Below are positions 973 through 64,000 of a stretch of 64,000 bases of DNA, in pieces. The notes under the pieces were generated by a model. That model did not search any database. It saw only the letters and a list, made by a program, of their open reading frames with translations, and was not told the DNA's origin. The translations under genes were made by a program, and so were the position numbers. Position 1 is the first letter of the stretch; each line of letters starts with the position of its first letter. Location of the stretch: sequence record MH791411.1; one strand, 5' to 3'.

Positions 973-984
973 ATATTTCAGTAC

Positions 985-992
985 TATAAATA
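985..992 (+). promoter_or_regulatory. T4-type late promoter TATAAATA
   Basis: Exact T4 gp55 late consensus upstream of the RBS (GAGG) of the lysozyme gene. Confidence 0.7.
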
Positions 993-1009
993 ATAATGAG
1001 GAAATCTTT

Positions 1010-1498
1010 ATGAGTAAATGGGAAATCAAAAATACCGACGAACAATTTTTTAAAGAAATTAAAGAATTTGAAGGTACTATTGCGTATCAGAAAAAACTTG
1101 GTTATTTTAAAAATGATAAGTTTTGGGTATATAAAGACAGTCTAGGTCTTGATACCATTGGTTACGGTCACCTTGTACTTAAGGGTGAAAGTTTCAAAAA
1201 TGGACTCACTGAAGCAGAAGCTGATGCTCTCCTTATAAAAGATGCTCAGACCGCTTACAATGACGCAAAATCAATCTATGATCAATTTGGAATGACTGCT
1301 CCAGTACAGGTTCAGCGTGTATTGTGGTTTATGGTGTTCCAAATGGGTAAATCAAAAGTTTTAAATTTCAAAAAAGCGATGGCTGCTCTCGGTCGTGGTG
1401 ATTATAAAACTGCTGGTAAAGAAATGCGTGATAGTTCGTGGTACAAACAAACCACATCCAGAGCGGAGAAGATGGCTCGCATCGTCGAATCCGTATAA
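1010..1498 (+). CDS. T4-type lysozyme (GH24), paralog of the upstream C-terminal domain
   Basis: EFEG...YKDSLGLDTIGYGH, MVFQMG and WYKQTTSRA motifs; collinear with the preceding lysozyme domain. Confidence 0.9.
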   Translation: MSKWEIKNTDEQFFKEIKEFEGTIAYQKKLGYFKNDKFWVYKDSLGLDTIGYGHLVLKGESFKNGLTEAEADALLIKDAQTAYNDAKSIYDQFGMTAPVQVQRVLWFMVFQMGKSKVLNFKKAMAALGRGDYKTAGKEMRDSSWYKQTTSRAEKMARIVESV

Positions 1499-1513
1499 TA
1501 AAGGAAACACATA

Positions 1514-1909
1514 ATGGCAATTGTTTTTAAAGGTTTTTCAACTCCAGTAGTTGGAAGAACTGAAACATTGTATGACAGTGAATTGGTTCGTCAGGATTTA
1601 ATGAATCATTTCAATACAAAAAAAGGTGAACGTGCATTTGATGCTGATTATGGGTTCATTGCGTGGGATTTGCTATTTGAATTGGATGGTTATAATACAA
1701 TCAACCTTTTGGAAGCAGATGCCCGTAGAATTATTAGCTTGGACCCACGTTTAAGCTTAAAGAAACTTCAAATATCAAGAATTGAGTACGGTTATCAGAT
1801 GGATATAGTACTTGAATATGTTGTTCTCAATACTCTTGAAGAATTAACTATAGTTTTTGATGCAAGAAGTAACAACAGAATGGCTACCTATTCTGTATCA
1901 TCTTTGTAA
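1514..1909 (+). CDS. Baseplate wedge protein, gp25-like
   Basis: 131 aa with LVRQDLMNHFNTKKGERAFDADYG...LLFE...IISLDPR pattern; located before the gp6-like gene. Confidence 0.8.
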   Translation: MAIVFKGFSTPVVGRTETLYDSELVRQDLMNHFNTKKGERAFDADYGFIAWDLLFELDGYNTINLLEADARRIISLDPRLSLKKLQISRIEYGYQMDIVLEYVVLNTLEELTIVFDARSNNRMATYSVSSL

Positions 1910-1914
1910 ATTAT

Positions 1915-1944
1915 AAAAGCACTCTTCGGGGTGCTTTTCTTTTT
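1915..1944 (+). terminator. Rho-independent terminator
   Basis: AAAAGCACTC-TTCG-GGGTGCTTTT followed by a T-tract. Confidence 0.85.
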
Positions 1945-1947
1945 GGA

Positions 1948-1953
1948 TAAATA
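1948..1953 (+). promoter_or_regulatory. Late promoter core TAAATA
   Basis: GATAAATA directly after the terminator and before the gp6-like gene. Confidence 0.6.
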
Positions 1954-2011
1954 TTTCTATATATAATTCCCAGTACTGAACTAGTACTTTACTGATTTAA
2001 AGGAATAAATT

Positions 2012-61840: not shown

Positions 61841-61870
61841 AAAAGAAAGGACTCTGTAATCAGAGTCCTT
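61841..61870 (-). terminator. Terminator-like hairpin
   Basis: AAGGACTCTG-ATTA-CAGAGTCCTT plus TCTTTT on the minus strand. Confidence 0.7.
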
Positions 61871-61880
61871 AATTTATATT

Positions 61881-62123
61881 TTATTCTTCTTCACCGAATC
61901 GAATTTTTTTCAATTCTTTTCGTTGTTTGCGAGCAATGGTACTTTTGTGAAGTCTATTACCACGTTTTGTGTCTTTCGTAATGTACCATGAATCTTCTGG
62001 TGCATTATAATCACAATAACCATCTTCTGTAATCGTCCCTAAGAAAGCAGACTTTTTAGGAATGGATGTTTGAGCTTTAGCAGCGAATTGGCCTTTTGCT
62101 AATTGTTCACGAAAACTGAGCAT
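61881..62123 (-). CDS. Small basic hypothetical protein (~80 aa)
   Basis: Start at MLSFREQ (GGGAG RBS); Lys/Arg-rich. Confidence 0.55.
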   Translation of the reverse strand: MLSFREQLAKGQFAAKAQTSIPKKSAFLGTITEDGYCDYNAPEDSWYITKDTKRGNRLHKSTIARKQRKELKKIRFGEEE

Positions 62124-62168
62124 AATAGTATCTCCCAAATTGTTACGAAGAACTTGTGTTCTTCATTA

Positions 62169-62411
62169 TTATTTAGGGTTGCTCGAAACCTCTACTGAAG
62201 CGATGAATGCCAAAATATCATCTTTACTGAAAGCTTCAATAATATAAGCAACCGCTTTATCGTACTGTTCTTTCTTAGTAGTGTATTCTTTCATTTTGTG
62301 AATTTTACGTTGTGCTTTAACTTTTGCAGCTTCCATATCAGGCATTTTAAATTCAACACCCAATGTGTCAGCTAAATGTTTTGCACGAGATGATACTTTA
62401 TCAATATTCAT
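62169..62411 (-). CDS. Small hypothetical protein (80 aa)
   Basis: TAATG overlap with the glutaredoxin gene. Confidence 0.6.
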   Translation of the reverse strand: MNIDKVSSRAKHLADTLGVEFKMPDMEAAKVKAQRKIHKMKEYTTKKEQYDKAVAYIIEAFSKDDILAFIASVEVSSNPK

Positions 62412-62659
62412 TAATTCCAGCGACCTTCTTTAAGACCTTCAACGAAACCAGTACAGCCACCTGGAACGTAAACATCGTTTACGAAAATTTGTGGAACCTG
62501 TCGTACTGGCTCACCACATAGTTCAGATAGTTTAGCACCATCAATACCAGCGGTAACAATATCGATAAACTCCATATCAAATTTGTTATTTTCACATACT
62601 GCTTTAGCAGTGTCGCAGAATTTACAACCAGTAGTGCGACCATAAATTTTAACTTTCAT
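62411..62659 (-). CDS. Glutaredoxin
   Basis: CKFC active site, RQVPQIF and GG motifs. Confidence 0.9.
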   Translation of the reverse strand: MKVKIYGRTTGCKFCDTAKAVCENNKFDMEFIDIVTAGIDGAKLSELCGEPVRQVPQIFVNDVYVPGGCTGFVEGLKEGRWN

Positions 62660-63093
62660 TTCTTTTCCCTTTATTTCGTTGAAACATTGTAACAGCCTTT
62701 ATTATACTGTTACACATTCGTTCAGTCAAATACTTTTGACAATCTAGTACATCAATGTACATGAACTTATCCAATTCTGGGTGACTTCTACCATATCTGT
62801 TTGTGTAAGTACTTTTACACTCCAACTCTTCTGGTATAGGCTTATCTTTGGCTGTATAGAAAAATAAAACTAAACGTTTCCCCTTTCTATACGATACATC
62901 ACCAAGAAACAGAAGATCATCTTCATCGATTTCATATCCTGTCTCTTCGTAGCATTCACGTACAGCAGCCTCTTTAAATGTTTCTGTACCTTCAGTTTTA
63001 CCTTTAGGTAAGTCCCAGTGATTCTGTCCGTGTTGTATGCCCGATAAGTATCTGACCATCACGATAAAATATTATACCACAGCTATAACGCAT
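62649..63093 (-). CDS. Nudix hydrolase (T4 NudE-like); requires a +1 shift, best placed at CGG 63028-63030
   Basis: Nudix box KGKTEGTETFKEAAVRECYEETG. The missing N-terminal strand MRYSCGIIFYRDGQILIGHTT lies in the upstream frame (ATG 63093, stop 63004). Confidence 0.85.
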
Positions 63094-63135
63094 AATCTTA
63101 TCTCTTTATCATCAAGTGATGTTCAGATACTAGTA

Positions 63136-63163
63136 ATTATATCAGAAGATGTTAACTTGTCCC
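63136..63163 (-). promoter_or_regulatory. Promoter GGGACA-N16-TATAAT
   Basis: Same architecture as the 44125-44152 promoter; upstream of ATG 63093. Confidence 0.6.
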
Positions 63164-63168
63164 AGCTT

Positions 63169-64000
63169 TTAGAACATTTGCTTGATTGCTTCAATACGCA
63201 ATTCAGCAACAAAATCACGAATCTCCGATGTTTGGAGTTCACCATCTTTCACTAACTGCTGAATATCAGGTAATTCAACATCAGTATAACGATCATAAAC
63301 TTTAATAATCAAATCTTCAAGTTCAGAATCAATTTCTTTGTTCAAAATGAAGTTTTCCAGTACTTTGTAAAGGAAATCTTCACCACCATTGTTTTTGATA
63401 TTCATATCCAGTAAGATTTGTCCCATTTCAACTGGGGTCTTCTTACGGAAGGTTTTAATATCTTCACGGAAACGCTTGATGTAATTACTAAACTTAACGT
63501 ACTTAACTGGAACCTTAATGGAACCGTTAAGTACTGAATCATTATTTACTTCTTCATTTTCAAGAAGTACTGTCCATAAGAAATATGGTTTATATTCTTC
63601 TGTACAATTTGCAGCGATAGAATCAATTAATTCCAGACGTTTCTTGGTAACTGGAACTGTAGTAAATGCCTTTTCGTAATAACCAAATTGTACCAGAGTT
63701 TTGATAAACTTGGAAGGGTTTTCTTCAGAAAGTGCTTTTTCGAATTCAACAAAAACACGATCTGGAACTAGATGGTCTAGTTCACCAGTACTAACCATAT
63801 CTTTACACATTGTCATAGTATCATCATGGATTGTAAAGTCGGAGTAACGCGTAGCGAAACGGGCCAAACGTAGAACACGCAATGGATCTTCTTTAAAGTG
63901 TTCTGATACATGACGAAGTACTTTGTTCTTGATATCAGCTTTCCCGCCATAAGGGTCGATGTGAATCTGGAGTACTGGATCATATGCAATACTATTGATT
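63169..64000 (-). CDS. cca: tRNA nucleotidyltransferase (CCA-adding enzyme, class II), 5'-partial
   Basis: Frame runs off the window end: INSIAYD...DPYGGKADIKNKVLRHVSEHFKEDPLRVLRLARF...PDRVFVEFEKAL. Confidence 0.92.
   Translation of the reverse strand, partial: INSIAYDPVLQIHIDPYGGKADIKNKVLRHVSEHFKEDPLRVLRLARFATRYSDFTIHDDTMTMCKDMVSTGELDHLVPDRVFVEFEKALSEENPSKFIKTLVQFGYYEKAFTTVPVTKKRLELIDSIAANCTEEYKPYFLWTVLLENEEVNNDSVLNGSIKVPVKYVKFSNYIKRFREDIKTFRKKTPVEMGQILLDMNIKNNGGEDFLYKVLENFILNKEIDSELEDLIIKVYDRYTDVELPDIQQLVKDGELQTSEIRDFVAELRIEAIKQMF

Follow-up and report, generated by a model that had tools for sequence, protein, structure and literature searches.

AGTACT, a highly iterated palindrome in the genome of Escherichia phage Ecwhy_1 and its jumbo phage relatives

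Highly iterated palindromes and comparable words

The highly iterated palindromes of cyanobacteria have been known for about 30 years without an agreed function. HIP1 is the octamer GCGATCGC, and alternate highly iterated palindromes also occur in cyanobacteria. Work by Elhai in 2015 and by Xu et al. in 2018 is said to have linked HIP1 to methyltransferases and to have addressed its conservation. The present report concerns the hexamer AGTACT in a stretch of 64,000 nucleotides, referred to as the window, from sequence record MH791411.1, the genome of Escherichia phage Ecwhy_1 (354,537 bp, Asteriusvirus, 121Q/RaK2 group). AGTACT is a phage counterpart of the highly iterated palindromes, which it resembles in the features tested, i.e. 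excess, presence in all reading frames, conservation and the existence of an alternate word. The literature searched described highly iterated palindromes from cyanobacteria only, and contained neither a mention of AGTACT iteration nor virion-DNA methylation data for these phages. The iteration appears not to have been described previously.

The comparison with HIP1 had been drawn in an earlier note made from the window sequence alone, and it holds: AGTACT is contiguous and palindromic, occurs in all frames and in intergenic DNA, is conserved above background and has another word in its place elsewhere. Both words are in many-fold excess genome-wide, combine conservation with site turnover, are replaced in some lineages and reside in genomes that contain methyltransferase genes. 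They differ in several respects. The host of AGTACT is a virulent Enterobacterales jumbo phage and not a cyanobacterium, and the word is a 6-bp A+T-rich core with soft flanks whereas HIP1 is a G+C-rich octamer. In addition, the phage genome purges nearly all other palindromes, carries AGTACT at fixed positions of early promoters and contains a strand-specific island of half-altered sites.

Other systems are similar in part. Phage orphan methyltransferases, such as Dam acting on GATC in P1 and in T-even phages, also lack an obvious partner nuclease and also coincide with a tolerated restriction-type palindrome; to our knowledge, no target of such an enzyme is enriched eight-fold genome-wide or reshapes proteins. 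The DNA-uptake sequences of Neisseria (DUS) and Haemophilus (USS) and the Chi sequence occur at about one copy per kb or less, and like AGTACT they are denser in self than in foreign DNA, lie inside genes in all frames with effects on the encoded peptides and form terminators as inverted pairs. They are asymmetric and read by cellular uptake or by RecBCD, while AGTACT is palindromic, viral and polar only in one 8-kb island. Finally, the SlmA-binding sequence of E. coli (GTGAGTACTCAC) has AGTACT as its central six bases (PMC3020112), and cells infected by a sister phage filament (PMC11895373). SlmA requires a G, a T and a purine at three flanking positions (PMC3020112). SlmA sites were rejected as an explanation: the phage has no full match, 20 + 11 half-matches against about 56 expected, and a preference for a pyrimidine at position -1.

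The window starts at record position 124,001, and the remainder of the genome was analysed as loci L001-L007. Compared over a 12-kb segment, the window matches Ecwhy_1 at 100% identity, several other isolates at about 99.5%, and 121Q and PBECO4 at about 84%. MH791411.1 is flagged UNVERIFIED, several of its genes being given only as 'similar to ...' misc_features with probable frameshifts, and for this reason independent isolates served to check sequence-level claims wherever this was important.

Excess of AGTACT over composition and codon usage

The window contains exactly 137 copies of AGTACT, estimated at about 130 in the earlier note, the first starting at 980 and the last ending at 63976. 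The zero-order expectation is 21.4, and dinucleotide-preserving shuffles yielded 24.0±4.5 copies with a maximum of 36. The octamer CAGTACTG, for which about 35 copies against about one expected had been claimed, is present 36 times against 1.28±1.05 in the same shuffles, none of which approached the observed count of either word. The excess persists at the codon level. The 44 open reading frames (ORFs) of the window hold 128 copies, compared with 37.7±5.4 after amino-acid-preserving synonymous shuffling and 34.9±5.9 after shuffling of the codon order (z about 16-17 over these controls). Each codon phase is enriched, with 81, 15 and 32 copies in phases 0, 1 and 2 against 28, 2.6 and 7 expected. 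The sister hexamers do not share the excess (TGTACA 25 vs 19, ACTAGT 15 vs 31, GGTACC 0 vs 21), and the one-off neighbours AGTACA, AGTACC and AGTACG are not enriched in the window. The refuting tests set in the earlier note thus leave the excess standing, and the observation is not only confirmed but more pronounced than stated there. With a maximal-order Markov model the prediction rises to 119 copies, but only because such a model takes in AGTAC and GTACT, the two pentamers that overlap within the hexamer and are enriched themselves; it is not counter-evidence.

The same holds genome-wide, where 986 copies were counted in 354,537 bp against 120 expected (8.2-fold) and where no hexamer is more over-represented than GTACTG, CAGTAC and AGTACT. 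The genes contain 841 copies, compared with 228±13 in synonymous shuffles (z about 49), distributed as 410, 155 and 276 over the three phases, and 148 copies are intergenic; CAGTACTG is found 183 times against 18. Several one-off neighbours reach 1.2-1.3-fold, AGTACA, AGCACT and AGAACT being mildly enriched and AGTATT/AATACT standing at 0.91. An artefact of codons, dipeptides or repeats is ruled out by the synonymous and codon-order shuffles in the window and in the genome. Together these controls show that the excess does not originate in protein composition, codon usage or dinucleotide content, and AGTACT is very probably a DNA-level word maintained by selection or drive.

The process behind the word is strong enough to alter protein sequences, as shown by dipeptide usage across the genome. 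Ser-Thr dipeptides are written AGT-ACT in 410 of 773 cases (53%, 15% expected) and are themselves more frequent than the 529 expected (1.46-fold), compared with 507 Thr-Ser (0.96-fold). Similarly, Val-Leu occurs 767 times against 599 expected (1.28-fold) and is written GTA-CTN in 52% of cases against 20% expected, and tyrosine in the context AG_T is encoded by TAC in 80% of cases against 36% overall. Ser-Thr richness is thus insufficient to account for the word, as had been argued earlier, the signal residing at the DNA level in both the shuffles and the dipeptide analysis.

Background of other palindromes

AGTACT stands out from a genome in which palindromes are scarce. GCGC is absent against 352 expected, and 27 other hexamer palindromes are present in 0-4 copies each, among them CTGCAG, CAGCTG, GGTACC and CCATGG, of which codon usage alone would yield dozens. 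In the window, none of these four occurs, the codon-shuffle expectations being 35, 25, 21 and 7, respectively. The general remark that phages usually avoid palindromes is strongly true here. This purge implies that the phage is under intense restriction-type selection, to which AGTACT is a conspicuous exception. GTGCAC (2.25-fold) and TGCA (1.64-fold) were also spared.

The unrelated phi92-like coliphage PHB05 (L252, 2476-27450) contains neither AGTACT nor AAGCTT, 8.4 copies of each being expected, and many small phage contigs have no copy of AGTACT. PHB05 has a set of genes in common with the jumbo phage, namely a C5 methylase (51% identical), a DprA-like gene, Sir2, PhoH and a NinI-like phosphatase. 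In a 50-kb sample of E. coli K-12, AGTACT was found 11 times (0.22 per kb, the chance level) and CAGTACTG was absent. With 2.8 copies per kb, the phage is about 12 times as dense as the host sample.

Distribution, flanks and individual sites

In the window, AGTACT occurs about 2.1 times per kb, evenly over genes of both orientations and the gaps between them. Genes on both strands, all codon phases and intergenic DNA carry the word, as the earlier note had stated, and all are enriched. Outside the early region of the genome, coding DNA (2.43 copies per kb) and intergenic DNA (2.53) are equally dense in the word. Spacing is Poisson-like genome-wide with a Fano factor of about 1 up to 2 kb. No regular or helical period was detected, the sole excess being a small one at 20-23 bp that results from the promoter copies described below.

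The hexamer has preferred flanks. C precedes 47% of the window sites and G follows 48% of them, the two halves varying independently. In the genome-wide logo, position -1 is C in 46%, A in 24%, T in 22% and G in 9% of sites, and T is weakly preferred at -3 and -4, which gives ttCAGTACTGaa as the fuller form of the word.

The sites of the window that are referred to individually are as follows, the names of the tail-tube, tail-sheath and dNMP-kinase genes being taken from the 121Q annotation.

980..63976, no strand assigned: 137 copies of AGTACT (full coordinate list, shuffle controls)
1971..61791, no strand assigned: 36 copies of CAGTACTG (counts, flank analysis)
980..992, plus strand: intergenic copy whose final T also begins a T4-type late-promoter-like TATAAATA; ORF 1010-1498 lies downstream (sequence tatttcAGTACTATAAATAataatgagg)
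1972..1988, no strand assigned: intergenic pair with a spacing of 11 bp (CAGTACTGAACTAGTACT), ahead of the 1153-aa ORF 2012-5473 (sequence read)
2298..2305, plus strand: octamer in codon phase 2, TCA GTA CTG, Ser-Val-Leu (translation)
3973..3980, plus strand: octamer in codon phase 0, ATC AGT ACT, Ile-Ser-Thr, the commonest phase with 81 of the 128 coding copies of the window (translation)
12319..12326, plus strand: octamer in codon phase 1, CAG TAC TGG, Gln-Tyr-Trp, in the 3333-aa ORF 5524-15525, which has 23 copies (translation)
44195..44200, no strand assigned: copy in the 10-bp gap between the minus-strand genes 43860-44189 and 44200-45609, its last base overlapping the stop-codon end of ORF 44200-45609 (coordinates)
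55538..55543, no strand assigned: intergenic copy flanked by the genes for tail tube (54744-55430) and tail sheath (55818-58481)
59228..59233, no strand assigned: intergenic copy beside the dNMP-kinase gene (58576-59202)
60573..60578, no strand assigned: intergenic copy between ORFs 59579-60385 and 60632-61009 (coordinates)

The octamers at 2298, 3973 and 12319 had been offered as examples of the three frames, and their translations are correct; likewise, the intergenic example at 1971 falls in the gap before ORF 2012. The late genes of the window include tail-fibre-like giants of 1153, 3333, 1644 and 1899 aa and those of the tail sheath and the tail tube; genes for thymidylate synthase, a DprA-like protein, an HNH protein and an ATPase are also present. 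The giant fibre-like ORFs (2012-15525 and 27958-38741) have a strand-specific excess of ACTGGT, CTGGTG and CTGGTGCA, which encode Thr-Gly-Ala. This strand bias is a coding effect, in contrast with the strand-symmetric palindrome. CTGGTG is also part of the Chi octamer GCTGGTGG.

Spread and conservation in relatives

AGTACT is the top palindrome of all enterobacterial RaK2-like phages tested, among them RaK2 (6.7-fold), CBB (10.2-fold) and 121Q (5.4-fold). Around the major capsid gene, it is the top palindrome (3.2-6.5-fold) in 10 of 10 IMG/VR loci whose capsid is at least 90% identical, at a G+C content of 33-38%. At 72% capsid identity one locus still has a 2.4-fold excess, and none is seen at 69% or less.

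Individual sites are conserved above background. Ecwhy_1 and 121Q are 82% identical in nucleotide sequence; of 110 aligned sites, 64 are conserved against 39 predicted from phase-matched hexamers (P about 1e-6), and 46 sites are private to Ecwhy_1 and 25 to 121Q. The differences affect all six positions and include transversions. In relatives at about 73% identity, site conservation is 1-2 times the background and about half of the sites of each genome are private. Conservation in the presence of many private sites implies that density is kept by continuing gain together with retention. AGTACT is shown to be clade-wide, specific to its six bases and kept up by a continuing process.

A different word was found in a more distant relative. 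In L033 (IMGVR_UViG_3300044959_000303, 50176-71393; capsid 65% identical), TTCGAA occurs 68 times against 7 expected. Its 57 coding copies, against 22.9±3.5 after synonymous shuffling (z = 9.7), lie in all phases, 11 more are located in 1.5 kb of intergenic DNA, and T is favoured at -1. None of the 80 nearest capsid relatives of L033 shows TTCGAA iteration, and some of them have a weaker excess of other palindromes.

Early promoters and terminators

The density of AGTACT rises to 5-6.6 per kb at record positions 290-320 kb, an early region with many small genes outside the window. About 35 early sigma-70-type promoters of this region contain the word at defined positions. In 15 cases it adjoins the -10 element within the spacer (TTGACA-N9-AGTACTG-TATAAT) and in 20 cases against the -35 element (AAAAAGTACTTGCA...TATAAT); some promoters have both, the copies being 20-23 bp, or about two helical turns, apart. 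For early genes only, density peaks at 10-16 copies per kb at -80 to -20 of the start codons. Outside the early region it is flat along genes and dips only at ribosome-binding sites and start codons, which rules out an explanation by promoters only. A resemblance to the LexA box (TACTG...CAGTA) in the promoter sequences was discarded because the spacing does not fit.

The word also takes part in terminators. Downstream of RCC1-like paralogues, two copies make the stem, CCAGTACT-tg-AGTACTGG, followed by a run of T. These genes belong to a tandem array at record positions of about 314,900-330,100 (L006 26881-42136) that comprises about 13 paralogues of 340-400 aa, which bear the annotation 'DNA condensation protein' and probably consist of RCC1-like repeats; most of them are followed by such a stem of two AGTACT. 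A large non-coding stretch at about 308,200-309,550 (L006) contains repeat units like ctttctatataggAGTACTattattcAGTACTg and many extra AGTACT and may be a genome end or a regulatory region.

An island of half-altered sites

One 8-kb stretch outside the window, at record positions 272,481-280,465 (L005:34481-42465), contains no AGTACT against 19 expected at background density (Poisson P about 4e-9). Its sense strand carries 43 AGTACA, 3 AGTACC and 2 AGTACG and not a single GTACT. The AGTACA copies occupy the codon phases 15/14/11 and have the usual flanks, ttC...G. In the independent isolate WPEC5, 47 of 49 aligned island positions have identical bases. In 121Q, a matching 6-kb stretch with sharp borders holds 0 AGTACT and 34 TGTACT on the plus strand. 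A sequencing artefact is ruled out by the recurrence of the pattern in WPEC5 and in the 82%-identical 121Q. The island genes are fast-evolving and Asteriusvirus-specific, their proteins being about 41% identical between the two lineages, and a Pfam scan of ten of these proteins gave no matches. Polarity of hemi-sites is confined to about 250-290 kb, the orientations being balanced over the rest of the genome. The island suggests that each half-site is read on its own and that orientation may play a part.

A neighbouring 5-kb stretch at about 283,000-288,000 (L005 45000-50000) consists of tiny paralogous ORFs without any form of the word. GTAC is nearly missing there as well, with 8 copies in 4 kb where about 45 are typical, and the stretch may be recently acquired or otherwise exempt DNA.

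Methyltransferases as candidate readers

The best explanation overall, which we favour tentatively, is that AGTACT marks phage DNA, is maintained by selection and is read by a phage protein with two-fold symmetry, a C5-cytosine methyltransferase being the leading candidate. The word in its fuller form would be a mark written into the genomes of enterobacterial RaK2-like jumbo phages. The sharply bounded, contiguous core and its replacement in L033 by TTCGAA, likewise a palindrome of 6 bp, suggest that duplex DNA is read here by a protein of two-fold symmetry, in the manner of Type II enzymes. The likeliest reader would be Ecwhy1_69, the orphan DNMT3-like C5-cytosine methyltransferase of the clade, an assignment to be taken as possible rather than probable.

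The earlier note had proposed a phage methyltransferase specific for GTAC or AGTACT, a proposal that stands in part. No methyltransferase gene lies within the 64-kb window, while the genome encodes two outside it, Ecwhy1_69 (286 aa, L001:28153-29013, with a Pfam C5 methylase match) and the Dam-family enzyme Ecwhy1_356 (174 aa). Pfam scans of ten proteins neighbouring the Dam-family gene revealed no third methyltransferase. Ecwhy1_69 aligns end to end with the catalytic domain of animal DNMT3A/3B (E 1e-23), its closest solved structures, and M.HhaI and M.HaeIII match its N-terminal half only. Its catalytic motifs (FxGxG-like, PCQ, ENV) are intact and its variable region is very short. Orthologues that are 63-100% identical were found in Asteriusvirus, Erwinia phages, Xanthomonas phage XbC2, CBB, EJP2, GAP32 and RaK2/K64-1, and the bearers checked for the motif (121Q, CBB and RaK2) are all AGTACT-rich. 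In a profile-guided scan of viral contigs, orthologues above 51% identity occurred only in enterobacterial jumbo genomes and none was found in relatives lacking the motif. The names of the homologues carry no specificity. In phage A4 (L249:10732-12630), as well as in TH47, JNE01, ph0011 and UE-S1, the C5 methyltransferase is a single 632-aa ORF in which an intein-like segment of about 346 aa interrupts the PCQ motif, in frame and precisely at its catalytic Cys.

Methylation by this enzyme would render about 1000 ScaI-type sites harmless. Such protection matters because the phage otherwise purges restriction-type palindromes and an unrelated coliphage purges AGTACT itself. At 2.8 copies per kb, as opposed to 0.22 in the K-12 sample, the mark would also set phage DNA apart from host DNA, and the copies at the roughly 35 early promoters, in the spacer by the -10 element or at the -35 element, could act as an operator or a methylation switch.

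Several observations weigh against a mark read by this enzyme. The co-distribution of the C5 enzyme and AGTACT is consistent with the enzyme reading the word but is confounded with phylogeny, and the search of the sequence collection relies on exact short peptide words. The 51%-identical enzyme of PHB05 has a variable region 45 aa longer and belongs to a phage that avoids AGTACT. Two unrelated contigs, L329 and L330, have homologues of about 50% identity in an equally short form and also avoid AGTACT, AGCT or GCGC being enriched instead. Two hexamers that contain GTAC, GGTACC and CGTACG, are missing from the genome, which speaks against a methylase of simple GTAC specificity. A phmmer search of the six-frame translation with E. 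coli Vsr (E≤10) gave no mismatch endonuclease of this type, and the deamination neighbour AGTATT/AATACT is barely depleted at 0.91, so that a repair drive in the style of HIP1 has no positive support; the neighbour pattern looks more like decay from a selected word than T:G-repair drive. Methylation would account for the tolerance of the word and not for its eight-fold enrichment, and some use of the mark must therefore be added. Such a use could be discrimination between phage and host DNA, the timing of early promoters or the loading of a DNA-handling machine. Finally, the conserved island with no AGTACT and 43 sense AGTACA is unexpected for the target of a symmetric methylase, and indeed none of the explanations considered predicts it.

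A broader form of this reading, which we regard as doubtful, is that RaK2-like jumbo phages, without a phage nucleus or hydroxymethylcytosine, label their own DNA with a lineage-specific palindrome, AGTACT or, in a relative, TTCGAA, read by a phage protein that is sensitive to the orientation of half-sites. Reading of the label would discriminate phage from host DNA and serve protection, transcription timing, recombination-dependent replication or packaging, and the orientation sensitivity of the reader would explain the one-sided AGTACA of the accessory-gene island.

Alternative explanations

A first alternative, rather unlikely in our judgement, is that AGTACT is the binding site of a non-enzymatic dimeric phage protein of the ribbon-helix-helix or small helix-turn-helix type that coats or organises the DNA at about 2.8 sites per kb and shuts early promoters by occupying their spacer or -35 flank. 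The earlier note had also suggested a protein of genome organisation, packaging or recombination, for and against which the evidence is even. Such proteins typically read palindromes of 6-8 bp, and TF1 of phage SPO1, which prefers phage DNA and represses early promoters, is a comparable case. Dimeric binding fits the graded flank preferences outside the hexamer (C much above G at -1, T at -3 and -4), the fixed and in part paired positions in early promoters and the density peak upstream of early genes only. It also fits the half-altered sites of the island, which retain their flanks as if one subunit still bound. However, no candidate protein was identified, and a 6-bp core without enriched one-off neighbours is sharper than the sites of most regulators. 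Binding alone also leaves the restriction survival of about 1000 ScaI-type sites unexplained, the word being purged by PHB05.

The island favours a second and improbable alternative, in which 5'-AGTAC / GTACT-3' is a polar half-signal, similar to Chi, KOPS or DNA-uptake sequences, that would be read by a machine tracking along the DNA (for instance a recombination nuclease-helicase, translocase, clamp loader, nickase or primase) and the palindrome consists of two opposed and overlapped signals. Overlapped signals would work from either direction and would mark phage DNA as self. The island word keeps a single orientation in all three phases (43 AGTACA, 5 AGTACC/AGTACG, no GTACT), and the island is maintained in WPEC5 and 121Q despite protein divergence. 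The twelve-fold density over the host sample and the inverted pairs that act as terminator stems, like those of DNA-uptake sequences, agree with a polar signal as well. On the other hand, hemi-site orientations are balanced outside 250-290 kb, a polar signal has no need of the perfect palindromes that AGTACT and TTCGAA both are, and no reader protein is known.

Functionless molecular drive by biased mismatch repair or gene conversion tied to a sequence-specific enzyme, the model of Elhai for HIP1, is very improbable. The equal coding and intergenic densities outside the early region, the Poisson-like placement, the turnover with many lineage-private copies and the presence of a methyltransferase would all be expected from drive. 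Its repair version of the Dcm/Vsr type was rejected on the missing Vsr homologue and the scarcely depleted deamination neighbour. Moreover, one-off neighbours in general are not depleted as the model predicts, several reaching 1.2-1.3-fold, Ecwhy_1 and 121Q differ at all six positions of their sites with transversions included, an island of unconverted one-off sites is conserved and placement in promoters is fixed.

A by-product of Ser/Thr-rich fibre composition, of codon or dicodon preference or of repeats in giant genes can practically be dismissed: the window is rich in long fibre-like ORFs where the strand-specific ACTGGT and CTGGTG are also frequent, and 81 of its 128 coding copies are AGT-ACT Ser-Thr dicodons, but the excess persists in every phase under amino-acid-preserving and codon-order shuffles, is equally dense in small non-structural genes and intergenic DNA, is accompanied by under-use of the reverse dicodon ACT-AGT and is strand-symmetric, unlike ACTGGT (139) and ACCAGT (25).

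Significance for the phage clade

Whatever its reader, AGTACT reveals a DNA-level pressure that is able to shift the dipeptide content of about 590 proteins. In metagenomes, this phage clade can be recognised simply by the word, which also predicts whether virion DNA is sensitive or resistant to ScaI and RsaI. The Asteriusvirus Sharanji grows on E. coli K-12 (PMC11895373). With such an element in a lytic coliphage of K-12, the puzzle of highly iterated palindromes would be open to ordinary phage genetics. If true, the reading of AGTACT as a self-label would amount to sequence-encoded self-recognition in a virus and would offer a tractable model for HIP1. It may be a route by which jumbo phages without a nucleus and with unmodified cytosines separate their own DNA from that of the host.

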